Source: Trichoplax adhaerens (lineage: Eukaryota > Animalia > Placozoa). From it: 64,000 nt of DNA. Position 1 is the first letter of the stretch. Every line of letters begins with the position of its first letter. Shown one piece after another: positions 18,258 through 61,246 of this stretch. The translations under genes and the position numbers were made by a program. The notes beneath the pieces are model-generated. The model had not been told where the DNA came from. It did not search any database and was given only the letters and a program-made list of their open reading frames with translations. The stretch spans positions 580,809 through 644,808 of the forward strand of contig NW_002060969.1 in the NCBI RefSeq assembly GCF_000150275.1, read 5' to 3'.

Positions 18258-19393
18258 CTAAGCTTCGTATGAATCTTCCTCGGCTATTTCTTCGATTTCG
18301 TTTTCGGCTTTAGGGAAGGATAAAGCTATGAGGTCATCTAGGCACAAGAATAAATTTTTAACTTTTTACCCCTTATAATAATTTGAATTAAAATATGCCA
18401 TTGCAAATATTAACCTTGCAAACAAAGTGTAATGTGAAATTAATAATGCGTGTGTAAGTGATTAGCAAGCTTACCTAAAACTATATATGCGGAAGACCTC
18501 GGTCTACCTTCACTATCTACAAATCTCCCATATGATAATCTACCATTAAGTAAGACCCGTTGCCTGAAAATACAATTGCAAATCATGTACGCGTATTAAC
18601 TATTACTGTAGCAAATCTATATACAGGACGTAGTATTACAAACTTCATACCCCTTCGTTACTGTTTGCATGATATAATTCTGTAACGCAGGCTTGTAAGC
18701 GAAGATGCTATGCCATTCCGTTTTAGTTGTCAAGTGTCCTGCCCAAAGCAGATAAATGTAAGGAAGAGTTATCCCAAATTCAAATATAAATTACGTTACC
18801 ATTTTCTTAGGTCACCATACGTACAAGAAGGGAAAGGTGACTACAGTACCCTTTTACAAGTGGAACAAGTGAGTAGAAACTTTCTATAGTATAATACCTG
18901 AGTCTTCATTTTTAACAAACCATGACCTATTCGTGGCAACAGAGAATCTGACACTTTTATCATCCACCTTAACGGGATCATTTCCAACATTTCCTAGCAA
19001 TTGCACATGATTGATGCCTAAAATGAGCAAACGATCACAAAAGTTTATTATCGAACGTGACTTTACTAATATTACATCCACCAATTTAATGATACAGCAC
19101 CACGACTACTATAATTAGGGTAATATATCTCGTCAATTCTCACGAGTTATACCATATTAGATGCAACGATAGTAAAATAAAAAGAAGCATATCGAAAACA
19201 AAACGGTATCTTGGTCAATTTTGTCACCAAAATCAATCAAGTTCCATTCACATAATGCTGCATTGAACATAATTCTAATTGATCTTACTTCGGATTGGTC
19301 GTCTCGACTCCTCGTTTCTTATAAGTCGCGAGGTAACCTATTACAGCAAGAAAAGATCCAGCACACGTTGTCTTACAGACGTCAAGGAAGCCA
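18258..19393 (-). CDS. SSBP1: Mitochondrial single-stranded DNA-binding protein (start codon uncertain)
   Basis: Spliced exons RPIRS|INHVQLLGNVGNDP...RFSVATN, KTEWHSIFAYKPAL...VTKG, RVLLNGRLSYGRFVDSEG, acidic tail EEIAEEDSYEA*; OB-fold SSB signature. Confidence 0.88.
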
Positions 19394-20377
19394 TGCTTTG
19401 ACTACTGTAGTTTATCTATCTGTAAATGGTTCAATCTACAGTACGATACTGTACTGTACACTCTAAATGTACTGTACACTATTATCGTACATACAGTACT
19501 GTACTGTACTGTACTGTACAGTACTGTACACTGAGTGTACAGTAACAGTACACAATGATACTACAGTACTGTACAGTACGTGGCACGTACAGTACAGTAC
19601 AGTATTTCAGTCCATCAAAAACAAATGGCCGAATTTAGAATATCTGTTGGACGTTACGTAAATTCGTCTTGCGCGAGTACTAAAAGTGTGTAAATTGACA
19701 AAATTTTTAAATATTATCGGTGTGCAATAGTTAACATCTCAGTTGAGAGGGGGTAAGCAATGATTCAAACAACTTTTGCTATTCTCATATGGTCTACTGT
19801 ACATTGTACAATAGTGTACAATACAGTGTACAGTATAGTGCAGTAATGAGCACTGACTATGGATTGCACCCAATAGGATTGTATGGAGCACTGGTATACT
19901 GTACAGTACAGTACTGTACTAACAGTGGTAGATGGAACAAACCGAGTTACGTCGTTTAGCATTAATTTTCCATGATATCTGTTAAATCGTTAAATCGGCT
20001 ATTTAATTGCTTGTTTGCCCCTCGATGCTGTCGGGGACTGTAATAAACCGGGATTTACTGCGCTGTACAGTACAGTACTGTACTGTACTGTACATTATTA
20101 CATTACAGTATTTAGTATTCCATGGTACTGAGGAGTACAGTACTGTACAGTACCGTAGATCCAGCGTGTGGTGTGTACAGTACTGTACTATAATCTGGTC
20201 AGTACAGTACAGTACTGTACTGTACTGTAACCAGGTCTTTATACAAATTTACTTCCCTACAGTGTTGCAGTACCATAATACTTATTCCCACTAAGATTCG
20301 AAGTGTCATGTAATGTCAAATGAACATGACAACTAGCACTGTCGTGTGGACCTCTAGAGCCGCTAGTAACCTAATGC

Positions 20378-20458: not shown

Positions 20459-21092
20459 CTAGTACTGAGAAACTTGCTGACACTGCTCAGTTTCATCTGC
20501 TGTATGCCAAATTATACCAGTCTACGTACAGATCGTATCTTTTATCTCTACATCATGCACCGGCAAAAGCTGAACGGAATATTTGAACTTAAATAAGTGT
20601 TGCGGATTTATGTTACGTATTTACTAGCGCATACTATTATATTATTGTATTGCATGATTCTTTGCATTCATTCTTATCGGTTACTGAGAGTTTAGAAGTA
20701 TTCGCACGCTACGATTTAACAATAAGGAAAGAAATATACTGTACGATTATGCGGAGGCACATTCATTTACTTAATACATTCAAATAGTCTTCCCTGTTGA
20801 TCACCAAATATTCAAAAGGACTGAATATCTTCACAGGAAATACAGTGCTTTTATTGGCACAACGTATTATGATTCTTTATTTGTTGCTACAAAAAGGCTG
20901 TAGTTCCTTTTTAGTTGCTATTGAGATTATTGTACTACATAAATACGTCATTTAACAATATAAGTAGCTTATCTTGGTATTTACTCGTATTCTCAATTTA
21001 TTGCTTAGTTAATAATTAATTATATTATTAGTAGTATAAGAGACGTTTAAGTTTATCGTAATTTATGTCTATTAGAATGTATACGTGTATAT

Positions 21093-21094
<2 letters not shown>

Positions 21095-21125
<31 letters not shown>
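21095..21125. repeat. (TA)n microsatellite
   Basis: Uninterrupted TA run. Confidence 0.9.
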
Positions 21126-21128
<3 letters not shown>

Positions 21129-22803
21129 GATATGATGCATCGTATCTATGGACGCATGGCTACTCTATTTCTAACATAACGTTATTGTATCATACGAATA
21201 CAGTTTCGAGGTTGATTATAACTATGTTTACTTATTCGAACCATGATTACGAAGTCATATTAATAGCGCCGGAAATATTCGATATCAAACTCTTCTTAAC
21301 AGATAAGGTGTACACACGACTCTTGAGATCCCAGTATTCTGATACGGTTTTCAATAAAATCGATATTATGATTAGTCATTGCTTGTAGTCGTTTAAGAGT
21401 TACAGCACTGCAATTGTATGAGAATGTTCTTAATGGTATTTGCATTAAAACTTATGTTTCAAGTTTTACCTTCAGATTCATTTATTGTTCCATAGATTCA
21501 ATATTCTAGAATGAATTAAATACATAAATGACAGTCTAACTTTTGATGTAATAAGGCTGCACGGGCTATAGTAGTACTACATAAACATACCGCAGTTTTC
21601 ATTAATTATACGAATTATCACTACTCTTACTAAATTTGATAATTTCAGATTGTAAGTTATAGCATCTATATACCTGAATACTAAGAATTTATAACAATTA
21701 TCCATGCAGTGTCCGCAAATGACTATGCTTTACCATAGATGTATATAAATGACGCGTTAGGAATAGGTATGGAGTTTACACATAGGCAATCCTATAAATA
21801 ATCGAGCTACCTTGTACAGTAGTAGAATGGAGCTCTAAGGATGTGTTTATCTCACTGTAATTCATATTTACAAACACATTCATTGAGCTCGATCGTACAC
21901 AAATGCCTAACAATCTGATCATAATCGCTTTCGCTTACGTAAAACATCTATAACATGGAATCGATCTTATCTGTAGTGACCATGCAGCATGTGGGAGGCA
22001 ACAGTTAACCAGTTGATAGTTACTGTTTTTATGTATTAACAATTTAGTATCATTACGAGTTTGGAATAGAATTAGAATTTTTAAGCACATATTAACTGCA
22101 TTGAAAGGTCTGATATGATGGTTAACTGATCTAAAGTATCTTCCTTCCCTCCTGACTTAATTTATTTCTTACCCTGCACAGTTTTATACGCCTGATAGTA
22201 TGAATAAAACAAACCTTCATTATCTTGTCTACCAATCGGGAAGGTACCTTTCGTTGTGAATGCTATAGCAAAAGTTGTAGTATCACATATTATCATGATT
22301 GAATTTTTGGCTGCTTCTGACAATAAGTTCTTTATTTATAATCAGTTTAAAGCTGGAGATATCGACAAATACACTACGACTAACTTCAAACCCTAATACC
22401 TGCTATAACTAGATTAACGTACGTTCACCAAGAAAATGGTAAAATCTCTTACGACCTCTCAGCAACGAAGATAAAAAATCCTCTTAGGAGCAACGAGAGT
22501 TTATGATATCACGCTAGCATAATTATTTAACTTTAGCTAGAGTATTTACGGTAAATAAAATCCCTCTCAAGTATCCTCATTCCTATATGTTTTAAAGCAA
22601 GAGTAACTTTACGATATGATTGAATTGGCTCTTGAAAGGTTAAAAATACTGAATACTGTACTGAAATACGTGTATAAACATATATGTAGTCTAAATACCC
22701 ATGTCAGTAGCCGCTCTTCAGACAATAGCGATGTGAGTATGTAAAGCATGTATATCTGCAACACAAGTCTACTTACTCTACTTAAAATTACCATAAAACT
22801 TAC

Positions 22804-25800
22804 CTGAGAGAGGAAGGATAATGCAAATTCTTGCTATTATTTTACATATAAACCAGTAAAAACATCGTATTAAAATTTTACTAGTTGTAAAGTATAAATA
22901 TGAATTGATCTGTTTAATACGAGTACTGTTGTGTATAACCTATACCGTATTATTTTAAAATAGTTTCAGTTGTATATCCACTAACGTATCGAAATTTACA
23001 TGGGTATCTAATATTTTTCTTTACTTACACGAAATCTAGCCGAAAGGTACCATAGCAAGGGCAAGTTCTGAAATTATTTTAAAAAATTGGTACATAATGT
23101 CAACATGGAATATCCAGTGGCTGTGATATGATCATATGAAATTAAATTAAAATATTCAGGATAAAATAGATATAACTATGAAATTCCTTATTTATCCCAG
23201 CTTCTCATTGAAACTTTATACACGTTAATAGAACTTGAAGAATAATTCTGTTTTTGGCAAAGATAAAAATATTAAGTTTATACTACATACTAAAGCATTT
23301 GAGGATACTTTCAACTACAACTCAACCAGAGAATACAGTGAGGCAAAAGTTAATTATTTAATGTATACTAATTATTAGAAGACTAATTTTTAACGTTATC
23401 ATAACCATCAATTTTTATTTCAATATTTACGTCTGCAACGTAAAATTCAAGGCGGTTGTCAACAGAGAGAACTAAGTAACTCAACAATCCTTAAAATTAA
23501 ATAGCCTAATAGGAATTGCATTTTAAATTATTTTATTTAGTAAGCCTTATGCCCCAATATGGCAAGGAACGAAACAATTATGTACGTATATACGTATATG
23601 ATTATATAAATAATACTGTATAATGAATTTTCCGAAATTAGAATATTTAATGATGACACTTAGTTGACAAGTACCCACTAGGCAATACTTAAAAATGTAA
23701 TGGTATCTTACATGATTATAAATCAGTTTACACTTACCGAATAATATTCACGCGAAAGGGGTATAGGGAATTCATTTGGCTACAATAAATTAAAAAATTA
23801 CTAATAGCAGGATGACAGTATTCATCAACTGTCGTCTGTAAAGTATTGTGACCCACTGCAAGGAATATTATCGAGTAGCATAATTCGTATTTTCATGTAG
23901 CCTAGTCTGTAAGTACCGTATGTGCACCAGCTAGCTAGATAATTGCCAAAGCATTCACAAGATAAAACTGATTTATTATGTTTTACGTTCACTTACCGTC
24001 AATAACGTAGTCTCGTAAGGTGAAGGTAGATTTGGTCTCTGTAACACATAGTTTGATATGCTTATTTTGCTTTCTTGCAGTTAATTAAACATTAACATTA
24101 TCATCTATTTTCATAGCAATAAGCTTTAAGAACTGTCACAATATTTATAGTGTTTATTTATAAATATTTCATTTTCTGAATTTAAACCAAATTGATATCG
24201 ATTAGCCATGATAAGCTGTAAGTGCTTGATAAAGAAATCACTACTTTATATTCACACCTTGTTATTATCTACAACGTAACTACGATGCCCATCAATTACC
24301 CCCGTACAATGTATTACTGTATATAAAGTGTAATACAGTACTTAAAGCAAGTCTTGTGGGAGTGCCGTATATTTGGCATTGCTTGCTATTGAGATCGTGT
24401 TGCACGAAATGTTAGTACCGCAAATGAATTAAAAGTGCGAACGATCCTCGCTAATATGCGCTGCTATTATTTTCAAGAAATGCTGTATTTAACCAGTAGA
24501 TCAGTGTAACATGTAATTTACTTACATTAAAGTATAAGGGTGACAATGCAGGAGATGGAAGAGCTGGAGATGAGTCATCTTGCTAATCGTAAATAGTAAT
24601 GAAAATAAAAATATATAATGTCCAGAATTGATAGCTAACACGCAGTAAAACGTCAATCCAGTTGCGATAAACTTACACGAAAGTATATGGGTACTTGTTG
24701 CGATGGTGGTGGTGGGGTATTATCTTGCTGTAATAGTTTACAATATAATCAGGAGAGGCACTACCTGCATAATTATACTAATTTATTCTAATAGCATAAG
24801 TAACTATTTTATACTGTATGTAGAGTACAGCGTTAGCACCTACTCTAAAGTAGATAGGTATTTCTTGTGAAGGCGATGGAGGTGGCGATGTCGGCTCTTG
24901 CTGTAATAAAGTATTTTAGATACAACTTATAAGATTGTAAATTTGTACGTACGATAATGTGACGAGTATGTCTTCCACATCGTACCTACCCGAAAGTAAA
25001 TAGGAGGAGGAGGATCAGTGGGATCTTGCTATCAGAATATGCATATTATTACGTTAAGTTAGATTCAAGTTTTAATGGAAATTATATCAGCTAGTTTATT
25101 GCGTCAGCATATATAGGATGCTACATAGGACTCTTAGCGTGTGCGCTTACACGAAAAGAAATCGTTAGCGGTTCTTACCACTATGAATCAAAAAGTAGCT
25201 TTAGCTATATAACGTAAGCTTATTCTGTAATTTTGATAGAATCCTAATATGTATAGTCCATAGTACTTACACGCAACTTGATTGGTTTTAAAGGTGGTAG
25301 TGGCCGATTTTGCTATTATAACATTAAGCGAAACGTTAACAGTGTCATTCAAAGTATAAGCCTTGATCGAAATAGTTAACATACAAACACTTGTGATAGA
25401 AATTTGTTGTAGGAATAAACACATAGAATAATTAAGCACAGCTATTAAATCTGCTATTAAGGTCAAAGGGCTACATTCAATTGGGATCTATCAGGTACTT
25501 ACATTTAGATAGACGGACAATATCCATAGCAACGGATCATCTCTCTAAGATATAATAATTATTTAATGTTATAGTATATTAGTGGTGATCGTTTTATTAG
25601 TACGTGCGTTTGGCAACGCGTTAAGAACATTGATACTAAATTACTAATACTATATTCGTATTAACGATATATAATGAATTCAAACATATCAATAAGCCTG
25701 CAGGTTTCAAAGATCTATGTCAGAGATTCTATTACCAAACAAAGATCATTAGAACACTGAACGCTATTATTATTACAGATTCTGATTATATAAAGCGTTC

Positions 25801-26817
25801 GAAATTGGTATAAAGATTCAAGTATCTACAGTAATTTTCACCGAATAGAGTTCTAAGTGAATACCTACACTGTATTAGCCATAACTTCGATTTTTTATTA
25901 TGGAGTTCATCATAGATTCTGTCACAGATTTTAAAGTAGAGTATCTATGGAATTTTTATTTTATTAAGTGTGCACTCACACGCATGAAGATGGAAGGGCT
26001 AAGCGAAGTCGAAATTTTTTTCTACAAAAAAAATAATTTTTAATAATGTATTTATCCATCAAGCATCTGCTAAGTATCGTTTAACATAAATAAATCTATA
26101 AAATTGAGCGGAAATCCGAATTCTTTACACTAAAATTTTCATATTGTTTATCAAAACTTACTTTTTTGTTCCTAGAAACTGGCGGCTTACTTCTCTAAAA
26201 TTAGTTTTAATATTAATGAAATATTATTAAAAATTTTGATAATGCATCTTATTAGATTTTGGTGAGAATTGTATAAACGTATCGTGATCATTTGAAGACT
26301 ACGAAACCTAATTAATAGGTACCACAAATTTTTCTTTTTAATTGTAATCTGAATATTTATTGTTAGTCCCGACATTGTTAGATGTGAAAACATCATCAGC
26401 GTACGTTAATATACAATGTTATCGGTTTCATTCTTAACCTTAAGCAACAATCTGCTTAAAAAACTGAATAAACAAGCCTTCAATTTCAACAGATTTTAAA
26501 ATGAATCAGTTGTCTCGTTCATTATAATTGTTTACATGGTCCCACTATGCACAATAATAAGCTATTAATTATTCTAGCAAATTTCTGATTCTATTGTAAC
26601 TACCTTTTAAATCGAAACTTTAATTGAGAATACTCACAACTAGGCTCTTTCCATTCAGCTTAGTCACTATTGGATGCAAATCTTTATTGTTTGAGCCTCC
26701 TTTTGTGATTGATGATGCCCTGTTTTCTTTAATTATTTTGGCATTATTGACATTATCGCAATAGGCAGTAGTCATGATGAATACCGCTGCGATTAATAAG
26801 ATTCTCCTTAATTTCAT
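22804..26817 (-). CDS. Micro-exon secreted prepropeptide (Q...PIYFR cassettes); 3' end unresolved
   Basis: Signal-peptide exon 26638-26817 (MKLRRILLIAAVFIMTTAYC...), then AG/GTRRG-flanked open phase-0 exons: 26162-26194 RSKPPVSRNKK; 25980-26021 KKISTSLSPSIFMR; 25503-25544 RDDPLLWILSVYLN; 25271-25312 QNRPLPPLKPIKLR; 24990-25028 QDPTDPPPPIYFR; 24844-24900 QEPTSPPPSPSQEIPIYFR; 24677-24727 QDNTPPPPSQQVPIYFR; 24526-24582 QDDSSPALPSPALSPLYFN; 23997-24038 RPNLPSPYETTLLT; 23738-23779 PNEFPIPLSREYYS; 23029-23067 NLPLLWYLSARFR; 22804-22833 QEFALSFLSQ. Confidence 0.8.
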
Positions 26818-29043
26818 TTTTTACTTTGTTACTATACCTATCATAGAAGAAGGAGCATTTGTTACTGCTGCAATTGAGTTAGTAATAACAGAGAAAGAAT
26901 ATCCAAGCAATATTTTAAGGTCGTTATATAAGATTACCAAATCTGATAGCGGTTAGGATAAAGTGATCATAATACAGACTTTAAATCATCAGGCATGTTA
27001 TTCCAAGCATATATTGTAGCATTTCTGAACTAATTGAATTTGAAAACGAATTTTGAACGCAGTCTGAGGCGTAACTTATATTGTACTCATACAGTGACGA
27101 TATACTCAACAAATGTTGAGTCAAGAAACTGACGAAGTTTTATTTCTAAATCGCTATCTATCGTGAATAATAAAATGGTTAAGCATAAAATAATCAACCT
27201 GTAACTTATAGTTTTACGGTAATTATGTCTATAAACACGCTTAAATCTAATATTACAGCGAAGCAATTTCAGAATCTACATTTCTTTATTCTAATAAACG
27301 ATCATATTTATAGTGTGTACTTCTAAGTACACGGTATAAAGTTACTGAACCTCTGACAGGTCCACGACAAATGGTAATACTATCTGTTAAATGAACACAT
27401 TATCGTAAACCGTCAGCAAAGCGACGGGAGTTTGCACTAGTATTTAACAATTTACACTGTGGAAATCTCTTAGACTCTAGCTAGATTATACCGTAGCATT
27501 ACACTTACATAGAAGTAGCATATTATTATGAATCATTCGTGTCTATAAGTAATTTCCTCCTGCTGTGCTCTTAACATTATAAAAGCTATCTTCTTTTGCC
27601 TATTTCATTAGTAGCTCTGGCAGTTACACCGTAAGCTTGCACGCTTTACCTATTCTACACCATTATAGTTGTTCGACTAGTCACATCGTTACTCGCATGA
27701 TAATCTTACACGACTATTCTCTTACACTAGCTCAATAAAGATTACTCTTCCGTTAACTATTCTATTGTACTTTATTGTGACTAATGCGAAACTCTCAACC
27801 TTCCGAAACATCGCAATATTGTTGCGGTACACTATTTCAAAGCCCTTGTTTCTATATTCTAACAAGCTACTATATAAAATTCGAACAAGTACAAACCTTA
27901 ACGAGTATTCAAAGTTTCCACTTCAAGGAAATTTGAAAAAGCGCCACGATTGCAATGATAAATTGTCGCCAAGATCGCACAGAGGGAATAATTTCGGTTA
28001 GAAAAGCAAAGCAAAGTTAACATATATATATACCTTCATTGTCCCTACAAACGATTCATAAATACGATAGATAATCTTTTAACGGAAGTGTTGATAATAC
28101 AACTTATAATTGATGATGTATATTATTTTAATGAGAGAAATATATTTACAGGATTCGCATACTTTAGCATTTCTGCATTTCAAGAACAAAGCGATGATAG
28201 TACTGCTATTTTAAATAATTAATTACGGTATGTAATCTAATAAATCAAGCCTTGCAAATTTGAAGACAGTAGCTAGCTTTTGATAAATATAATTATTATT
28301 ATTGAACTAGGATTTTACATACAATTTAAATTTCTTAGAATGAAGCAAATACCTTACGGATAATAGAATACCCAGATACCAGATGACTTTACTTGATTAC
28401 CTAAAATTTCAATACGGAAATACGAATTCTAAATTTAGTATCCAATTATTCCTGTATCGAAAGTATTTTCTAATACTACAGTAATAAATGTGATGCTAAA
28501 TTAGCGAACAACATGAATCGAAGTCCTTTTAAATCAGACTTACGGTACACATTATTTAGTAGATTAATTTATTTGTAATATTGTAGTATCATCCGATAAA
28601 GCTCCTATCAATTATAAATTTCAATTTATAGAAGACAAGCATCCTTCTTGATAAACAGTTTACCAAAGATTAGATGGTCGTTACATTATTATTCAACACA
28701 TATTGGTATTGGAGTATTTCATTCAAATATCAGCGTACCGCTAAATTCAGTTGAATGAGGCAACGCTAATCACTAATGTCTATAAATAGCACCTACAGCA
28801 TCTTGCATTAAGATCATTATTGACGCTAATTGATATACGTGTATAATAAGACGCTAGGGTATTTGCAAATGTTATAATGTTTCCCAAACATTATATCTAA
28901 ACAAAGTAACACCAAACTTCTCATCCATTAGAAAAACGTTTATAACCTACACTGTGCGTTAGCGACGCCTCTACGTCATACCCGGTGCGATACCGTAGTA
29001 TATTATATGTACATGCATACTGTGTTCTGATCCATAGTAAAAC

Positions 29044-29495: not shown

Positions 29496-31484
29496 TCCGG
29501 AGTGTGTGTGTAGGTAAAGACGTGGGTATACTTCAAAGTGTGTATACAGATACTCCACCGTACAATCCGTCGGACAAAGAGTATAAAAGTCGAAAGTTTT
29601 TAAAGGTGCGTAGTATGGGTTAGTGATGGATAAATAATTAATCTGCAAGTGATATTTATCATATTACAGTCATTGTTATTGTGCTAATAGCTTATCATAA
29701 TCTAATATACGACATAAGCTATTGCTTAAAATATACATGAAATATTTACTAACAACGGTAACCAGCTGCTCTATTTTAATCCATTTGTGAATGAATTTGC
29801 TTAAAACTGTAAGGCAATAATATCTTTAGCAAATCAAATATCTTACATACATAAATAATATGATATTAATATAGGAAATGATTGATTTAGGAATAATTAA
29901 ATAACGATATTGATACTATTGACCATATTTAGTAAATATTTTGGTAAGATAGCTTAATGTTAATGTTTTGATCAATCTATCGGTGCTAAATTATTGAAGG
30001 TATCGTTCTACCTTGCCTTGAGTATCATTTGGCAACTCACATTTTCCGCTGAAATGCGAGATGTTGTCCAATACTTGGAAAGTGTATTTATGACCGGAAA
30101 TTGCATAATTAATTGTATACAATAATTATATTTTTATGCTTCTATCTAAACATTGATCTTACAATAATTATTTCCTACTTTGAGATACTCCAATTTATAA
30201 TTAATGCTTACTAGTCTCATCAAAAGATATTCAATTGTCCTTGTATTCTCACTACTTACGATTATTTTTAGCTAAATAGATCTATTTTTGTTAGTTCCGC
30301 AAAGTAAATTAGGAGACATATTCTAAATGAAAACAGCATAATATCAATGTAATAGTTTCTTTGGAAAACACGTGTAGAATAAATTTTGAAGGTAATTGCA
30401 GAAGTGATGCTTCCTATTTGGTATCTATGAAATACTACTGCCTTAAACTACATTATCAAATAAATAGTGATATAGTATCATATTTTGGGTAAATTTAAAG
30501 TTCTCTCGAAGCTAGTTCTAATTCTATAACAACCAGGAAAAATTTTTATTCTATAACTTGCAGCTATATAAGATTTCTTCAAAGAAATGATAACATCAGT
30601 ACTTATCTAAAATATTATAGACACGATGCTCTGTAATAATGCGCAGTGTACAGAATTATTGGTGTATATTAAATGTGAACTAAAAGTAACCTTAATTAAC
30701 ATTTGTAAATAAAAGGTAGTAGCACTATAGTGTGTCTAAGATAAACTCAGCAATTAATCGATAAACTTGAGTGCATTTGATTACTAGCAATAATCATAGA
30801 AGTCTTTAATGAAAGGTACTGTAGCCAATATCAATAGTCATTTTAGCAATATGAACTCAATTTTAAATTATGATAGGAAGCGGGTCCCTTCACTAAGTTT
30901 ACACTTTTTATTAATATTTATCGGCATTTGCTAATCGTTCAAGTAATATTAGAGCGGTCCTACAGGTGAAGATTATCCCTAGAAATTTTAGTTAACACCT
31001 TGTAATTTACGATACGATATGCTAATTAATGAGTGATTTGAACAACTAAATGATTGATTTAAAGTCAATGCGAAATCGGCTAGTTGGAAATTAAAACTAT
31101 TATACGACGAATATATTCTTGTGTAATATCCTTTTTGCTAAAGTATCTTCAAAAATAATAAAAAAAGAACTACAGTTTCTTGTAAACTTCGCTTTGTTAC
31201 ACAAATTAGGTTCGTCTTATAATTACCAAAAATTATCTAGCTGCAATCGGACTATCATCAGTCAATCAAATAATATTAATGAGATTTTATGGGTATCACG
31301 CTGTTAGCAGTTTCTGACTGAAGAATCATGATCTCGGTACCGGTACCTAGACGAGCATAGACAAACTGAGCCAACCTAGACTCTATTAACTTAAAATTGC
31401 ACCATATTCCGTGGAATTTCTACAAATTTTACCAGTCTAAGTTATTACGCGAAAATTCATCAATTATGTGTAATGTTACAAAAT

Positions 31485-31684
31485 NNNNNNNNNNNNNNNN
31501 NNNNNNNNNNNNNNNNNNNNNNNNNNNNNNNNNNNNNNNNNNNNNNNNNNNNNNNNNNNNNNNNNNNNNNNNNNNNNNNNNNNNNNNNNNNNNNNNNNNN
31601 NNNNNNNNNNNNNNNNNNNNNNNNNNNNNNNNNNNNNNNNNNNNNNNNNNNNNNNNNNNNNNNNNNNNNNNNNNNNNNNNNNNN
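31485..31684. other. Assembly gap (200 N)
   Basis: Run of exactly 200 N, a round placeholder length typical of a scaffolding join. Confidence 0.99.
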
Positions 31685-34600
31685 AGATTTTCGGGCTTTA
31701 CACTCAAAATTGTTATTTATGAGATTGCACCCACGAACTAGTAAATGAACGTTAATACGTCTTTAGCGTCGGCCATAAACGAACGGTATCTAAATTTAAA
31801 TTTTTTTATAATTTCGTTAGCGTACAAGTTAGATTATATTTAGGCTTCTAAAGTTTGCTTTGTAAGCAATCGATAATTGACTAACATCCTATCCAACTGT
31901 AGTACATGAAATCCAAGTCATATAAGATCGAATTATGGGATCGAGCACAGAATTGCTCGCCTATTAAGGGTTTTAACGTAGGTTATTTTTCGTCTTATGC
32001 ACTAATAACATGCAATGGACATCATTTTTTTAATTAATTTGACTATGATTTAAAATTCGGAAGACCCAATCTAAGTAACAGCCGACAGGAATCTTATTCA
32101 CAAGCTATAAATTTTGAAATTATTAATGCGGATTATGTTTGTAGCCAATTATAGCACTAATTATTACGTAAGTATATAAAATTCTCAAAGCTATTATATT
32201 ATTTAGATATAATTTTTTAATTCCTGAATAGCCTATAATGTTCGAAAGGTTGTTTTCAAAAGATAGTTCGCAAATCTAATAATGCAGCACTAATACAGCT
32301 AAATACTTTTGTTCAAAAGCACTACAAATATTGAAGTGTTTAAGTTCTTTCTTCATAGTTAACAATATCACCCTTACATGCAGCATAGCTGATATCAGTA
32401 TATGAGCAGAGTGTTATATGATATTCTTGGCAATAGATTAAAAAGTAGAATAAATTTAACTGATTAAAAATTAACGTAGGGCATTCGTCGTTTACAGTAT
32501 TGCAATTAAGAGCGACTAATATTGTAACCGCTACGATATCTAAAGATCATTGTTTGATATTAATAGGAGCATTTCCATGCAATAAATAGATGACAAGATT
32601 CTTTATCACCCGTAAAGTATGCAGCATAATGTAATGAAGATTAATTTTTAGAATTCTCCTTTAAGCTTTTATATTATTTTCATAAGTATTGCAGCTTTAA
32701 AAATAACTTAATTTGGTTTAACTTAGTATCGTAACATATTGTAAACCCGACTCCTTTATTCGGGTTAGAACTTAAGAATATTCTGTAGCATAATTTTGAT
32801 AAGAATATCGCGATATTAGATTGTAATTTACGTGATATATTTGGTCAGTATCATACTCATGCTTCATTCATGATAAAAACTTGTAGCCCATTTTGATTAA
32901 AAAATACAGTAGAAATAATGTTACTTCGTTATTGAATACAGTGCAAACCCAAACGTTTCGATATAGGTTTTAATTAAGATTGTTAGTCTGTCTTAGTCTT
33001 TTTTATAGGTCTATATTATATAATGAAGAAAAGTATAATTTGTAGATTTAGTAATACTGGGAATCTAGGGTACAATTTATCTGATCATATGTATTTGATT
33101 GCTAGTTTTTTTTGGAATACTTTAGAATAGTAATTTGATAGTCTGATATCATCAACTGCTCTGCGCAGCATACGCATGTAAAAGGCGACGTAGTTCAGTA
33201 GAAACGTAGTTCAAGCCTTAGTTCAAGATAGAAAATGGGGAATGAGATTTTCCTAAATTCATGAGTAAATCATATTTTACGTTGGTAGTTTGATTGGTTG
33301 AGACAATAAATTTTGCTCTTACTGTAATTTTTAATTGATTTTTACAAGTTATTCGCTAAATTCTAAATAAACTGGTATTTTCCCGTAATTCTCCTAGTTT
33401 TGGGGTTTAAAAGTTGTTGGATTTACTTAAACTTTTACGTCCGTTATTACTATAAAATATTCCTGTATCAAATTTTCCATGATTTCCATACAGTACTACC
33501 ATGTATTATTGCCATAATAACCGAATTTATGAATTCCTACCGAGTAATTCACATGTACTTGTTTTATAAATTTAAGTTTGTGCATCTTTATCACTTCATT
33601 TATCATCATATTTCATTCACACTAGTAAGGACTATGAATCTAAAGAATTCTTGTTATTATTGAGCTATTGTCTATAGGGTGCACCCATCAGTAAGAGAAT
33701 AATACTATTCTAGACTTCTCTTACAAAAATATTTTAGGTGCAATGAGTTTTGAATTTTATGAACATATGAAAATACGGCTTTTCCTATTTTAGAATGCTA
33801 AGAATAGCATTTTTGTGGCCGTATTAATTTCGTCATATTTTATTATTTTTTTATCGAACGTCGAAGATATTATTAATTAATTGAGATAAAACTATTATTT
33901 TATTAACTATAATTAAGCCAATTTTACCTTGAAATTTTGTATCATTAAAACGTTTACAATACATTAAAAATGAGCAAATAACCACCGCATTGCTGGCACT
34001 CTGATGCTATTGTCTTCTGCCGCACATCATTTCTAACAGTATCAATTGAGGCTCGACTGTCACAAGATTGGAACTAAAAATGAAAATGTAAACTACTTCA
34101 CTCAAGGATAGGGTACTAACTTGTTGTCATATATAGTGCATTTCTTTTTATGCTAACGTATACTGGTGTCAAATACTACTACATCGCAGACAATTGCATA
34201 ATTAATCATGGTTTGTCATGAAATGCGTATTACTGAAGTTATAGAGAGATATACAGACTTACTAACTATATTATACGATTAAAGTTATCTTTGCATGTAT
34301 TCTCATATCAGTATATTTAATAAAGTAAATTATTGTGATCCAACAAAGTAAAAAGGGTATATTTATGAGAGCACACAGTAGATAATGCAGGATTTATGTT
34401 AATAATTATAATCTCATAATCTATGAAAGTAGATTATAAATAAGAAAAAGACATTTAGAATACGATGTATACATTTAACTTCAACGATAAAATTATTCTT
34501 CATTCTCCTTAATATTTGCCATCTTCCTGCTAAGTACTATGTGTACAGTAAAATTTTACTGTTACAGTAGTTAAAAAATTAAAATTTGATAGGTTCTACG

Positions 34601-35585: not shown

Positions 35586-37388
35586 CTACTTTCCTTCATA
35601 AATTATTGGAGGGGGCTGTTTATATTCCCTTTTTCTATTTATCAAACGCAATTCATCTTTTAAAGCTGATTTTGCAGAGCGATCTTGATCTCCAAACCTT
35701 GGTAATCCAAGAAATAATTTTTTCTTCTGATCATAGCTTGTCGACATATCTTTAGTAAATCTTTCGCTGCTACGCCTTTTTAACATGGCCATTGGTATTT
35801 CGTTACCGGATTCCAAATATACTGTTGGGACGTCAACAAACCCACCACTTGCTAATCCAGTTGAGTCCAAGTTCCAAATTGGTAGATTATATTTTCCAAA
35901 AGCCTTACTATCAGGTGTACTTTGGGCGAAAGAAAGTTGATAATCAAGACTTGAGGGTTCTGTCATGCTTGTTAGATAAGCTATATCTTCTGGCATCGTG
36001 TACATTTCAGGCCCATAATTGTATAATTGCCTAGCTAACAGATTGTCCCTAGGGACAATAGTTTGCTTTGTCCCTGTTAGAAATTAATTATTCATCACTT
36101 TAACGAAGCGATATATCAGGTTTCTTTTAAAATTGAGTACAGTATACGCTGGACAATTCAAAACTAACAAAAATTATAAACAATAACAAGAAATACTTAC
36201 AAGCATCCCTTTTGTGCAAATTGATACTAGGTAGCCCATACAGCTTAGGTTCGTTATCTCTGTTGCTAAATGTAAGAGTAGGCATTCGAAATTCCATGCG
36301 TTTACTATCTCTCTTACCAAACATAATGGGGGGTATATTTTGTCGGATACTTTCACTATTTCTCTTACCAAACGTAATGGAGGGTATACCTTGTTGGATA
36401 CTTTTACCATTTCTCTTACCGAACGTAATAGAGGGTATACCTTGTTGGATGCTTTCACTATTTCTCTTACCAAACGTAATAGAGGGTATACCTTGTTGGG
36501 TACTTGCACTATTTCTCTTGCCAAACGTAATAGAGGGTATACCTTGTTGGGTGCTTTCACTATTTCTCTTACCAAACGTAATAGAGGGTATACCTTGTTG
36601 GGTGCTTTCACTATTTCTCTTACCAAACATAATAGATGGCATTCCTTGTTGGATGCTTTCACTATTTCTTCTATCAAGGACATCAGAATTGTGAGATTGT
36701 CTGCTTACTTTGATATCTGAAATCAAGAAAGAAATCGTAAATTAAATTTTTATTGCTTAACTAGTCTACATTATGAATATATGCATTCGGCAATGATTGC
36801 ACCCTTTCATGAATGCAGTGTAAATACAATAGTAACTGTAAGCTTCCTCTGCTACTCGACATCATAGTTATCTTATATCATAGAATGAATTTATGTATTC
36901 AAAATTTTCATTTACTCAAGTCTAGAATGTAAATATGCAAATTCTGGTAATAATAGTATCGTTTTAGTAGTACACTGTAGAACCGAAAAGATCACTTATT
37001 ACCTTCTAAATTTCTCCTACCAAAGCCTAGAGGAATAAATGTTGGTTGTTCACGCAAAGTGTGTCTCTTAGCTGATGATATAAAACGAGCATTTCCTAAT
37101 AATTATGAAGTAATCTTTTAAGAGACTTGCTTTGCACGTTCGATATCAAAAAAGAGTAATCGATTTTATAACTTTTTAGAACCATAATTACTTCAATGAG
37201 TAACTAACTGTAGATAGAATAGTTTAGATCGAAAATTGTTTACTATTTAAGATTACTACGTTATGCTTTAATATATCATGATGCCAATTTATTCTAAACA
37301 GGTATTATTTTATTTTACCTGGCGTAGTAGCAACCACTACCGCGATCATGAGGATAGTGTAAGATAGGAAAATCGAATTCGTTGCCAT
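35586..37388 (-). CDS. SITFamide neuropeptide-type precursor, 4 exons, ~388 aa
   Basis: Exons 37319-37388 (signal peptide MATNSIFLSYTILMIAVVVATTP), 37003-37095, 36201-36716, 35586-36073, joined by phase-1 introns in frame; seven 17-aa units ending FGKR (five GIPSITFGKR) give amidation plus dibasic cleavage sites. Confidence 0.93.
36207..36666 (-). repeat. Coding tandem repeat, 51-bp unit x ~9 (7 conserved, 2 degenerate)
   Basis: Repeating CTATTTCTCTTACCAAACGTAATAGAGGGTATACCTTGTTGG on the + strand, encoding NSESTQQGIPSITFGKR on the minus strand. Confidence 0.95.
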
Positions 37389-56812: not shown

Positions 56813-59800
56813 ATGGACCATAAGATAAAAATTTTAGCATTGATAGTTATTGCTATTGCTGGCCTATCTTCAGGAAAATCGATGGTAAGTCAATGTTGAT
56901 AAGAATAATAGCATTCTATTCATTTTTAATTTTAAAACTTCTTTACCGTACTTGACATATGTCTCAAAATTAATACGACAAGAACTTCGATTCCTTCTAA
57001 AATTCGCTTTATTACATGAATAAAACTAGCCACTACCATTATCTACGTTTGCAGCGCCAATCAACACCTTTTCTAAATATTAGGCACCTGTATAATCTTA
57101 CTGTCTAATCTGTATACATGATCTATTTTGGGTTACACACTATACTCTTTAATACATTATTCGTTCTCAATTATTTTGCCGAGTAGATTTTATGTTCAAA
57201 TACTGTATGGAGTAGATATATTGATCAAAACCATAATTAAGTTATTGATGGTACATTATCTTCATCATAATTATAATTGATCATTTCAGTTTACTACAAT
57301 ACAAGAAAACATATTTGTTATCCAGCGACATAGAATCGAATGTTTGAATATAATATCGAAGGTTATTGTCTTATACTGTATGATACTCTTGCGATAATTT
57401 TGAGATTAGCCATAAATAAGATAAATTTACTGCTGATGTTCGATAGAATAGAAGATAGTGTAAAAATCTTACTATTAAATGAAAGATTACGCTATATGTA
57501 TAATCTGGTACTTAGACAGCAATGCTTTAGTAGAATTTAAACAAAAATTGATAAGTTTAGACTCATAGTGAACACTTATAGCTACTTCTTTAAACTTTTC
57601 TTTTAAGTTTTTCCGGTAACATCTACCGCTTAAATCATTATATTTTAGCGAATCATTTAATATTGCTTTCAATAGATATTAGACTTTATGAATTTATACT
57701 AATTTCTTATTCACCTATGAGTGCTCTTGTAGTAAATCTCTAAAAATATCAGATTAGTTTTATTGATGACATAATCAACTCTAATTGACAAACATAAACT
57801 TGAAATTTTATTATGCATAAATTATTATATTTGGATGTTAAAGAGTTGTTTAACTAAAAAATTCTTTTTCTTTCACTCTTAAACATCGCTTCTAGGATAA
57901 AAATGGGCGAAATACTGTTTCTCTTTGGACAGTTAGTATACTCATATATGCACATATAGATAGATTGAAATGATCTAGTGTCGCAAATTACCTATGAGTA
58001 AATCGTATTATTTTCTTTTATTGTCTATCTTCCCCGGATTACCGATTACTTATGCATTATTTTAATGTTAAACTTGACACAGTCCGCAGCTAGAGATTCT
58101 AAACTAGCCGAAAGGGTAAGTAATTATGAATGTACCTTTTAATATAATATTAAATATTCCAACGAGTTTACCATTACATTTTTACATTTTAAGAGAATCA
58201 TTCAGTAATGATAATTCAACGTAATTAGTATGACCAACATCTATAGTATACTATAGCATGCAATACAGTATACGTACTGTACATATACATGTATTGGCAC
58301 TATTATCAACAAATCTTGAATGCGAGATGACAATTTTTCGTCATCACTTTTGTATTTTCTTTAATTATTTAGTTAACCGCTTAAGTTATAATTAAGTGCA
58401 GTAATCCAAAACTCACTGTGGAAACAAAAAAAGCTTTAATAACATTTAGAATAACAAGTTGTTCGGTTGTTTAAAGCAAACACATTTGTTAAATATAGAA
58501 CGATCAACGAAAAGGCTATATCTATTGGGAAACCAAACGCGATGTTAGTCAAATTTAAAATTATTATGTCCTTTTTACAGTATTTTCATCCCAATATATT
58601 ATAATTACGCAGTTGCTACATCATTCGTGCGCTTTCTTAATTTCAAATTCGAAATCCTATTCATTGGCTTGATTTAGAATACTCTAATAACATTATGTTC
58701 ATTTATTGGTTAACAGTCGTGCTTTAAAAATGTATTTGATATATATTTCTACTTATTTTAAAAGTTTTCATGCATATGTAGTATTTAATTCAATTAAATT
58801 GTAGTTTGCGCTAGTTTTTGAAATACTTAAAATATATTATAATTCAGTTAAATCATTACTGTTCATATATATTAATTCAATATTTAACTAATTTCTTATA
58901 TAATTATGCCTTCAAATTAGGAAAATCCTGAGGTGAGCTTCTTATCGTTATAAATTCTTGTTCACAAATTTTATGAACAGTTTATTAATTAATCGATTTT
59001 CTTAATTTATACCGCTATTTATTAATCTATTTTACCTAAATGATATCCAGAATTGGCCGTTACTTATGTGCCATGTATTACGATCATATCTGATATCTAC
59101 AGCTATAATTCAAACTTAATTGATCTTTGCATATGCCTGATATTCTATATAATTATTGAATGTTATAATTAGGAAACTGTATTATAAATGCTCATAATCT
59201 CACTTATTCGATAATCTTTACACATTTAATATCGCATCTTAAGTAATATGAAACGATTACTACTTAGAAGATTAATATAAATCGGAACAGTATATCATTA
59301 CCGTTTACAGATATTAATCATTCGACATTTAATCGGTTCTTACGTATAGCTATGCTACTAAATTAGGGTAATCCTACCGTGAGCGAGCTTTCTTAACATA
59401 GGAAATTATCTTGCCAATATCGCCATAACTAACAAAAATTTATATTTCTTAATTTATATATCATCACGTGTTAATCTATTTATACCTGAATGACATAATC
59501 CAGAGCTTGGCATTTTTTAAACGCAAGGTATTAAAATCAAATCTAATCTCTATATTACAAATCTAGGCTTACTTGATATCGATATATTAAATTTTAAATT
59601 TTTCTGTTTATGAATCTATATTCATTTTGGAAATACTGTAATTGTAAATGTAGCATTTTATTCCTGGTCATAGATGATCACTAATATTTCTAAGTCCTTA
59701 TATAATAACTTGTCTTACCTTCACTTACCTATAAATAATGGTTCGGAGTTTAATAAAACGAGGCATAAGTCACTTATTTCTAAAATACTTATACGTAAAT

Positions 59801-61246
59801 AAGACGTATATTGATAGTATTGATATCAATTACGTACGCGTATACAAGTGACTGACTATTTAATTAATTTCCTATGTATGGCTACACGATGAAATCAGGA
59901 CAATTTATTGGTTAGTAGACCATAACTATAAATTCATCATTTCTCTCTAAAGCATAGAATTGTTGCTATTTTCTAAATTTAAGGCTATATGATACTATTT
60001 AAATTCATTGGTGTCTTTTCCTCTAAATTTAAGGAGGATTATCCTTTTTTCGGAAATAAAAAACGCCAAGATTATCCTTTTTTTGGAAATAAAAAACGCC
60101 AAGATTATCCTTTTTTCGGAAGCAGAAAACGCCAGGTCAGCTTCTATGATTGTTATAATATATATTACAATAAACAGTAACGAAAATTGATATTTAGAAG
60201 TTGCCCATTATAAAGCTAAGCGTAGTAATTTCAACAGGCATAATTAACAATTTTTTAGAATCATTCTATCAATGCTTATCTGTATTCAAACAGTATATAT
60301 TATTACACATTGTATCCGTATTGTGAATCCAAAGCAAAGCAGCCATTATTAATGAAACACCATAATTTGATGGCCATATTGACAAATAATTGAGATTGCT
60401 TCTCTTTAATAGTGTGCAATCCTCTCCTGCAGTATTATAGGCATAGATTCATTTCCTACATTAAAATATCGTTCTTTATTTAATGATGCCGTTGACTGTA
60501 CTGTACGTTAAGCATACAAATGTAAATTATTTCCCCCAAAATTCCTATTACTTTACACACTTATTTTCATTAATATTATGGGCTGATTTCCATGTTCTTA
60601 CATGGAAAATGGTGAGCTATTAATATTATTTAATAAAGTGAAGATCAATTAAATGAATAATTGAACTTTATGCTCCACTTGTATAGAACTTAAGGGAAGA
60701 TAAAGTGGACAGTTCGGTAAGTTATTTGTAAATAATGGTTGCAAATTATGTAATGATACGCATCGTACAGTATTAATATAGGAATATAAAGTGTTACTGG
60801 TTAATATCGCTCCTTTGAAAGCAAAAGTTTAATCTATCTGAATCGATAAACATGGCTATTATAGCTTAAAGTTATGATTATAATTATTAAGAGATATAAT
60901 TATTTTAATTAGGATGATATGTGGGATTTCCTTGAGAGAGATGTAAGTATATCACTACCATTTAGTCTGCTAAGTTTATAAATTTAACCAAGGTGAGTAT
61001 ATAAAGTGGTTACCAATAGTTTTGCTGTATGACTGCATAAATTTATGAACATTGATTATGCTAATAATGATGAATACTCAGTCCAATTAAACAGTATAAC
61101 AGCAATCAGGTCAGCAATTGTATAGCTGTTGATTTCAATTAAAATGATTTACATCGTAGCACTATCTGTTTAATGTTTTAATGTAGATCATTCCTTTTTG
61201 GAAGAGGAACCGATTGGCCTCCATTAAGAGGTCAAGAATGAATTAA
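56813..61246 (+). CDS. ELP: Endomorphin-like peptide (YPFF) precursor, 11 phase-0 coding exons, ~151 aa
   Basis: Exons 56813-56884 MDHKIKILALIVIAIAGLSSGKSM; 57896-57931 DKNGRNTVSLWT; 58083-58115 SAARDSKLAER; 58499-58543 NDQRKGYIYWETKRD; 58921-58932 ENPE; 59504-59527 SLAFFKRK; 59899-59910 DNLL; 60034-60135 EDYPFFGNKKRQDYPFFGNKKRQDYPFFGSRKRQ; 60687-60716 NLREDKVDSS; 60913-60942 DDMWDFLERD; 61187-61246 IIPFWKRNRLASIKRSRMN*. Confidence 0.9.
58915..59600 (+). repeat. Diverged intragenic tandem duplication (~450-bp period) inside the YPFF precursor gene
   Basis: AATTAGG..AATCCT...GTGAGC, TTTCTTAATTTATA, TTAATCTATTT, ACCT.AATGA, ATCCAGA, GTATTA recur at about 58915 and about 59361. Confidence 0.75.

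Follow-up and report, generated by a model that had tools for sequence, protein, structure and literature searches.

The DNA analysed here is a window of 64,000 nucleotides (nt) from the placozoan Trichoplax adhaerens (RefSeq assembly GCF_000150275.1, contig NW_002060969.1, positions 580,809 to 644,808 of the forward strand), and all coordinates below are those of the window. Its minus strand carries a gene of some 17 exons over about 7 kb, single-copy in Trichoplax, whose protein is encoded largely by very short exons; we refer to it as the micro-exon gene. The coding sequence (CDS), spread over exons E1–E15, specifies a Pro/Ser/Leu-rich, domain-free product of 255 amino acids (aa). Exons E2–E14, all 30–57 nt long and all multiples of 3, provide 564 of the 765 coding nucleotides (585 with E15 included), and every internal exon is phase 0-0, so that skipping any one of them would preserve the frame. 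We describe the gene and the evidence for its splicing, and then weigh the proposal that it is the precursor of several short secreted peptides.

Gene model

Exon E1 (26638..26839, minus strand, as are all exons of the gene) consists of 22 nt of 5' untranslated region (UTR) and 180 nt of CDS (60 aa, ATG at 26817), with a GTGAGT donor at 26637 and a joint at 26638/26194. Its N-terminus, MKLRR followed by about 13 residues of hydrophobic core and then by small residues at TAYC, is signal-peptide-like on a heuristic reading; hydropathy in an 11-residue window peaks at 2.99 over residues 6–16.

The 12 exons downstream of E1 have AG acceptors and GTAAGT, GTAGGT or GTGAGT donors, and all of them are delimited by joints in RNA. 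The first four are E2 (26162..26194; 33 nt, RSKPPVSRNKK), E3 (25980..26021; 42 nt, with the C-terminal end SIFMR), E4 (25503..25544; 42 nt, RDDPLLWILSVYLN) and E5 (25271..25312; 42 nt, QN...PIKLR). They are followed by four similar cassettes, namely E6 (24990..25028; 39 nt, QDPTDPPPPIYFR), E7 (24844..24900; 57 nt, QE...PIYFR), E8 (24677..24727; 51 nt, QD...PIYFR) and E9 (24526..24582; 57 nt, QD...PLYFN). The series continues with E10 (23997..24038; 42 nt), E11 (23738..23779; 42 nt), E12 (23029..23067; 39 nt, with the C-terminal end SARFR) and E13 (22804..22833; 30 nt, QEFALSFLSQ). A pseudo-exon lies between E5 and E6 (25151..25180, minus strand); this dead cassette has kept its ...ISFR end and a GTAAGC donor, and its second codon is an in-frame TAA.

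An earlier reading of this DNA from the letters alone (the sequence-only reading) had ended the gene at E13, at position 22804. Its 12 micro-exons are exact, and the transcript extends further 3', through two coding exons and a 3'UTR exon that the reading had omitted: E14 (22215..22262; 48 nt, open, with a weak GTTTGT donor), E15 (21470..21505; 36 nt, seven codons and then a TAA, which lies 12 nt upstream of the final junction) and E16 (21097..21338). The 3' end of E16 is inferred from the length of a contig of RNA run X14, described below, and AATAAA motifs stand at 21002, 20881 and 20855. At the other end of the gene, an AG directly precedes 26839, and the X14 contig continues for 57 nt 5' of that position; in run X6, the 25 nt 5' of 26839 agree with 27921..27899 in 23 of the 25 letters, allowing one indel. 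We regard a 5'UTR exon near 27.9 kb (27897..27955, minus strand) as probable, ending near 27897–27899 at a GTTTGT donor. A TATA-like run at about 28021–28033 lies some 100 nt upstream of it.

Evidence that the exons are real and spliced

A mechanical scan for an AG, an open phase-0 exon whose length is a multiple of 3, and a GT[AG][AG]G donor recovers all 12 exons of the sequence-only reading at the coordinates of E2–E13. Tightening the donor pattern leaves 14 candidate micro-exons in 22.7–26.7 kb against 7 in the remaining 60 kb of the strand, and dinucleotide shuffles of the 4-kb region (n = 300) yield a mean of 0.49 candidates and a maximum of 3. The series of exons far exceeds what chance would produce. 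At the intron stop-codon rate of 0.077 per codon, the probability of finding no in-frame stop over 196 codons is about 1.5e-7. The GC content is 0.38–0.49 in the exons and 0.30 in the introns. The features reported earlier, that is, a signal-peptide-like exon followed by 12 open phase-0 exons of 30–57 nt, are all present on the minus strand.

Transcript evidence comes from contigs of four public runs (X14, X6, X9 and X4) over 21300–27200. The three RNA runs, X14, X6 and X9, belong to three studies; X14 is recorded as RNA-seq and derives from organism B, while X6 and X9 derive, in separate studies, from organism A. It is important to note that assembled contigs drop rare isoforms and fix neither transcript ends nor expression level. 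In X14 and X6, the contigs join exactly across all 12 predicted introns, whose CT..AC ends correspond to GT..AG when the minus strand is read, which bears out the splicing that had been predicted, and X9 contains 10 of the 12, the missing two being those that flank E11. Run X4, with even, unspliced, DNA-like coverage that includes the introns, has zero joints; because the joints are absent from these DNA-like data, the joined forms are RNA products. Three further joints, 22804/22262, 22215/21505 and 21470/21338, connect E13 to E14, E14 to E15 and E15 to E16, the first two being present in X14, X6 and X9. The joint 25028/25271 bypasses the pseudo-exon, which every RNA contig omits. The gene is real, and it is spliced in Trichoplax RNA.

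The sequence-only reading had further proposed that skipping of the symmetrical exons yields a splice-programmable peptide cocktail. No exon-skipping joint was found in the contigs of X14, X6 or X9, a weak negative since rare forms could have dropped out of them. The sole variant is a 769-nt contig of X9 (23029–23767) that keeps the E11–E12 intron, at a depth of 71 against about 756 for the spliced chain.

One junction deserves separate mention. At E2/E3 (26162–26167 plus 26015–26021), splicing fuses A6 and A7 into an A13 run coding N-KKKK-I. The run is A13 in X14, in the window and in both public gene models, and A14 in the X6 and X9 contigs, where it would change the reading frame so that E3 runs into a stop. 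Transcriptional slippage is excluded because the run exists only after splicing, which leaves reverse-transcription or PCR slippage, or a strain polymorphism, as explanations of the A14. Poly(A) tracks such as A13 are known to stall ribosomes.

The tandem cassette array

E5, the pseudo-exon, E6, E7, E8 and E9 form a tandem array (24520..25290, minus strand) of exon-plus-intron units of about 150 nt. The repeat family D1, a motif plus donor (...TAC TTT CGT GTAAGT and variants), has six copies spaced 120–167 nt apart, and these correspond to E9, E8, E7, E6, the pseudo-exon (copy at 25145–25166) and E5. When the units are aligned, they share a common cassette frame, and their middles differ in length and sequence. 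E5–E9 arose via tandem duplication of the exon-plus-intron unit.

As had been reported, E6–E9 begin with CAA GAT or CAA GAG and end in PIYFR (three times) or PLYFN. Among the PIYFR ends of E6, E7 and E8, two to three of the five codons differ in each pair; for example, Ile is written ATT, ATC and ATA, and Arg CGG, AGA and CGT. Because all of these differences are synonymous, the motif, including its terminal Arg, is selected at the protein level: on this codon evidence, it is the end motif PIYFR with its Arg that selection preserves, rather than the splice donor, and this fits a processing site.

C-terminal ends with a hydrophobic residue and Arg are also found in E3, E5 and E12; an N-terminal Gln opens E5, E6, E7, E8, E9 and E13, and an N-terminal Arg opens E4 and E10. 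The related ends PIYFR (three copies), PLYFN, PIKLR, SIFMR and SARFR, after each of which comes Q or R, would place several short peptides next to basic sites. The claim that an R/Q junction coincides with the exon boundary holds at E5/E6, E6/E7, E7/E8, E8/E9 and E12/E13.

Public annotation of the locus

The gene is already partly present in two public models. RDD41141.1 (P0001), named 'Single-stranded DNA-binding protein, mitochondrial [Trichoplax sp. H2]', joins E1–E11 to exons of the mitochondrial single-stranded DNA-binding protein (SSB) at 19337–18261; TRIADDRAFT_61842 (P0003) joins E1–E14 to the same SSB exons and starts at Met15, without the signal peptide. Pfam assigns SSB to residues 227–327 only, and nothing to residues 1–209. 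In the RNA contigs, E14 continues into E15, with its in-frame TAA, and then into E16, with no loose contig end at 22215 or 23738. Because E14 joins the stop-bearing E15, both SSB fusions are contradicted, and the OB-fold domain of SSB lies outside the product of the transcript, the stop in E15 preceding any SSB exon. Both public models are chimeric and misnamed after the downstream mitochondrial SSB gene. The description of the gene as hidden was hence right in that it is concealed within SSB-named chimeras, and too strong in that E1–E14 and E1–E11 already stand in public models.

The SSB gene itself (18261–19394, minus strand) has its own candidate start, an ATG at 19394 in a mini-exon of six codons (19394..19377) that is separated by a 39-nt intron from the exon at 19337. 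Arrays of CAGTA/TACTG precede it at about 19440–19520.

Relatives, strains and structure

Homology searches used exon 1, residues 1–209 of RDD41141.1, and the two public proteins as queries. Against 1.84 billion representative proteins, the only real match of exon 1 is RDD41141.1, and against 5.8 billion proteins, residues 1–209 add only TRIADDRAFT_61842. A further protein (P0002) was rejected as a homologue, its match being a spurious one to a repetitive protein. In the 105.6-Mb assembly (1414 contigs), the exon 1 protein and the 831-nt array DNA match no locus other than their own, and the motif-plus-donor DNA pattern has 28 matches against 26 for a control, clustered only at this locus. Searches of a protein atlas gave no fold and no look-alike, all structural template-modelling (TM) scores being below 0.25. 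A single-sequence AlphaFold model of TRIADDRAFT_61842 has a mean predicted local distance difference test (pLDDT) value of 38 throughout, the SSB domain included, and is hence uninformative.

In Trichoplax sp. H2, all 15 coding exons are intact. The H1 and H2 strains differ by 31 substitutions in 6.5 kb. The CDS contains a single one of them (A10V) and the micro-exons have none, a pattern that would fit constraint. The 3'UTR differs by 4-nt indels: GTAC is inserted near 21309–21314 in H2, X6 and X9, and TATA at 21122–21125 is deleted in H2. E16 also contains a (TA)n microsatellite (21080–21125).

Neighbouring peptide genes and known systems

Three genes of described placozoan peptides lie within 10–35 kb of the micro-exon gene: the SITFamide gene (TrispH2_005562) at 35.6–36.7 kb of the window, the PRYamide gene (TrispH2_005563), also in the neighbourhood, and the ELP gene at 56.8–61.2 kb. 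In the SITFamide precursor (36130–36741, minus strand), all repeats stand in one exon. The ELP (YPFF) gene (56815–61240, plus strand) has very small exons, two of which (near 58921 and 59366) measure about 12 nt, and three copies of its peptide in a single exon (60034–60136). Elsewhere in the window, an assembly gap (a run of N) at about 31470–31700 appears as X-filled open reading frames.

A collinear alignment of the units of E1–E5 with the SITFamide repeat exon has a local score of 64 against 32.3 +/- 5.6 in 500 shuffles (z 5.7, none of which reached it); by composition-adjusted BLASTP, the match is marginal (E = 0.07). The last, divergent SITFamide units (...PPIMFGKR, ...TLTFSNR and ...LPSINLHKR) are collinear with E3–E5. 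The alignment suggests an old tandem paralogy between the two genes, its statistics being marginal. A proposed likeness between the QDPTDPPPPIY cassette and the terminal QPPPIIY peptide of the SITFamide gene was rejected, as it does not rise above shuffles (z 0.24).

The micro-exon gene resembles placozoan precursors (WPPF, SITFamide, ELP/YPFF and RWamide) in its putative signal peptide, in its repeated short peptides, in a conserved aromatic C-terminal end followed by one or more basic residues, and in an N-terminal Gln able to become pyroglutamate (pGlu). Non-amidated ends in ...F are likewise found among placozoan peptides (WPPF, MFPF and LF). In the available part of Table S5 of Najle 2023, pGlu peptides are common, and mass spectrometry identified pGlu-QQKKPYNGWPPF, which lies between D and a single R in the WPPF precursor (PMC10580291). 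The ELP repeats, Q/EDYPFFGN/S, are bounded by basic residues (Senatore 2017, PMC5612019). Processing of this kind has a placozoan precedent. The gene differs from these precursors in having one copy per micro-exon, with the splice junction at R/Q, whereas SITFamide and ELP keep their copies in one exon; it also has no Gly for amidation, its Gln directly follows Arg without an acidic spacer, and its peptides are predicted from the gene.

Outside the placozoans, the Xenopus caerulein and magainin genes consist of multiple tandem small exons with one peptide copy each (PMC3731216), and share with the micro-exon gene the same growth by exon duplication. They encode vertebrate skin-gland defence peptides of unrelated sequence, and their duplicated exons are nearly identical, whereas the Trichoplax cassettes have diverged except at their ends.

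Proposed processing and alternative explanations

We consider that the micro-exon gene encodes a secreted precursor of several pGlu...PIYF peptides, with one cassette per micro-exon, and assign this reading a probability of about 0.6. The exons, their splicing, the reading frame, the array and the selection on PIYFR are the observed basis of this explanation, whereas secretion, cleavage, modification and signalling are what we infer from it. E1 would supply the signal peptide, and each of the 14 phase-0 exons would supply one short cassette. As most cassettes end in a hydrophobic or aromatic residue plus Arg and the next starts with Gln or Arg, each such junction would be a candidate monobasic or dibasic site. 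A prohormone convertase would cut after the Arg, a carboxypeptidase would then strip it, and glutaminyl cyclase would close the exposed N-terminal Gln to pGlu. The predicted products are the non-amidated pGlu-DPTDPPPPIYF and two longer ...PIYF relatives, and further products are probable, for example from E3, E5 and E13. Of the four products listed in the sequence-only reading, these three ...PIYF peptides are retained as candidates, while the PLYFN product is doubtful, as it needs a cut at an R followed by P. Convertase specificity disfavours cleavage at Arg followed by Pro.

Several observations weigh against a peptide precursor. The available part of Table S5 of Najle 2023 (PMC10580291), the peptidomics source in which pGlu...PIYF was sought, contains no IYF, LYF or other motif of the gene; the N-terminal Gln of detected placozoan peptides mostly follows D or N, not R. 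The candidate peptides, with a blocked N-terminus and no basic residue, may be expected to ionise poorly, which would weaken the peptidomics negative. The gene identifiers 61842 and RDD41141 have no match in the papers or supplements searched, so that no cell-type expression is tied to the gene. The cassettes contain no Gly amidation signal, and E4, E10, E11 and E12 are hydrophobic, unlike typical peptides. The 1.84 and 5.8 billion proteins searched include no orthologue outside Trichoplax H1 and H2, and between these two strains, the one CDS substitution seen against about 3.7 expected is not a significant deficit. As to novelty, the literature search gave no paper linking PIYF with Trichoplax, and neither the Mayorova 2025 supplements nor the available part of those of Najle 2023 has an entry for the gene. 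As far as the described placozoan peptides could be checked, the precursor is missing from their number, in agreement with the earlier statement.

The explanation that competes best, although we hold it to be clearly the less probable, is an intact proline-rich disordered protein, secreted or at the cell surface (mucin-, adhesive- or matrix-like), in which the Arg residues are not cleavage sites and the exon-per-repeat structure reflects exon duplication only, as in collagen, elastin and titin PEVK genes. The composition of the micro-exon residues (19% Pro, 12% Ser, 12% Leu) agrees with it, as do the missing fold and amidation signals, the hydrophobic E4 and E12, which are unlike peptides, and the peptidomics table, in whose available part none of the peptides occurs. 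What such a protein would leave unexplained is that the C-terminal pentapeptide with its Arg is selected while the cassette middles vary, a pattern of multi-copy peptide precursors and not of structural repeats; moreover, there are only about four clear repeats, and the gene lies within a cluster of peptide genes.

Schistosome micro-exon genes (MEGs) suggest another explanation, in which the main purpose of the gene would be product variation by regulated skipping of symmetrical exons. MEGs consist of a signal peptide and 10–20 symmetrical exons of 6–81 bp, all multiples of 3 (10.1101/2023.06.21.545858), and the Trichoplax gene fits this description: it too has an exon for a putative signal peptide, very short symmetrical phase 0-0 exons that carry most of the CDS and any of which could be skipped in frame, a presumably secreted product, and a structure that is hard for gene finders. 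MEG exons are mostly 15 nt long, whereas those of the Trichoplax gene are 30–57 nt, and the latter's combination of repeats with cleavage sites is foreign to MEGs. The contigs of the three RNA runs show none of the alternative splicing that characterises MEGs; they give one full exon chain, the retained intron of X9 being the sole variant. In sequence, the gene is unrelated to MEGs, a family confined to Schistosomatidae, and because searches of 1.8 and 5.8 billion proteins hit nothing but the two Trichoplax models, it is an analogue and not a member of the MEG family. We consider this explanation improbable.

The weakest alternative, that the public annotation is correct and the micro-exons are an N-terminal extension of mitochondrial SSB, has in its favour that both models draw the junction (from E14 or E11 to 19337..18261) and that Pfam finds SSB in the fused protein, and it can be set aside almost entirely, given the path of the contigs through E15 to E16, the mutual disagreement of the two models, the loss of the signal peptide in the H1 model, the senselessness of a secretory signal on a mitochondrial matrix protein, and the candidate ATG mini-exon of the SSB gene itself.

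Significance for placozoan peptide signalling

Placozoans coordinate their behaviour by secreted peptides and not by neurons, and the catalogue of these peptides is still incomplete. If the micro-exon gene is a peptide precursor, the locus adds a candidate whose products would include three or more non-amidated pGlu...PIYF peptides closely related to one another, and possibly others. Owing to the SSB fusion and the lost signal peptide, screens based on signal peptides or motifs would tend to miss it, as might procedures that assign 3'-end single-cell reads to genes. Genome-based peptide predictions overlooked ELP (PMC5612019), and such screens overlooked the micro-exon gene likewise; micro-exon architecture is thus something that peptide discovery in the Trichoplax genome systematically fails to see. 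The locus also illustrates clearly how a peptide array grows through duplication of an exon-plus-intron unit.

A broader proposal, which we regard as speculative and rather unlikely, is that Trichoplax repeatedly assembles the precursors of secreted signalling peptides from successive symmetrical micro-exons, with splicing and cleavage falling at one and the same junction, the present gene and ELP, 30 kb away, being two instances, and that regulated skipping or array expansion in the present gene sets which pGlu...PIYF peptides each cell releases. If this were true, an animal without neurons would gain control of its peptide repertoire at the level of splicing.

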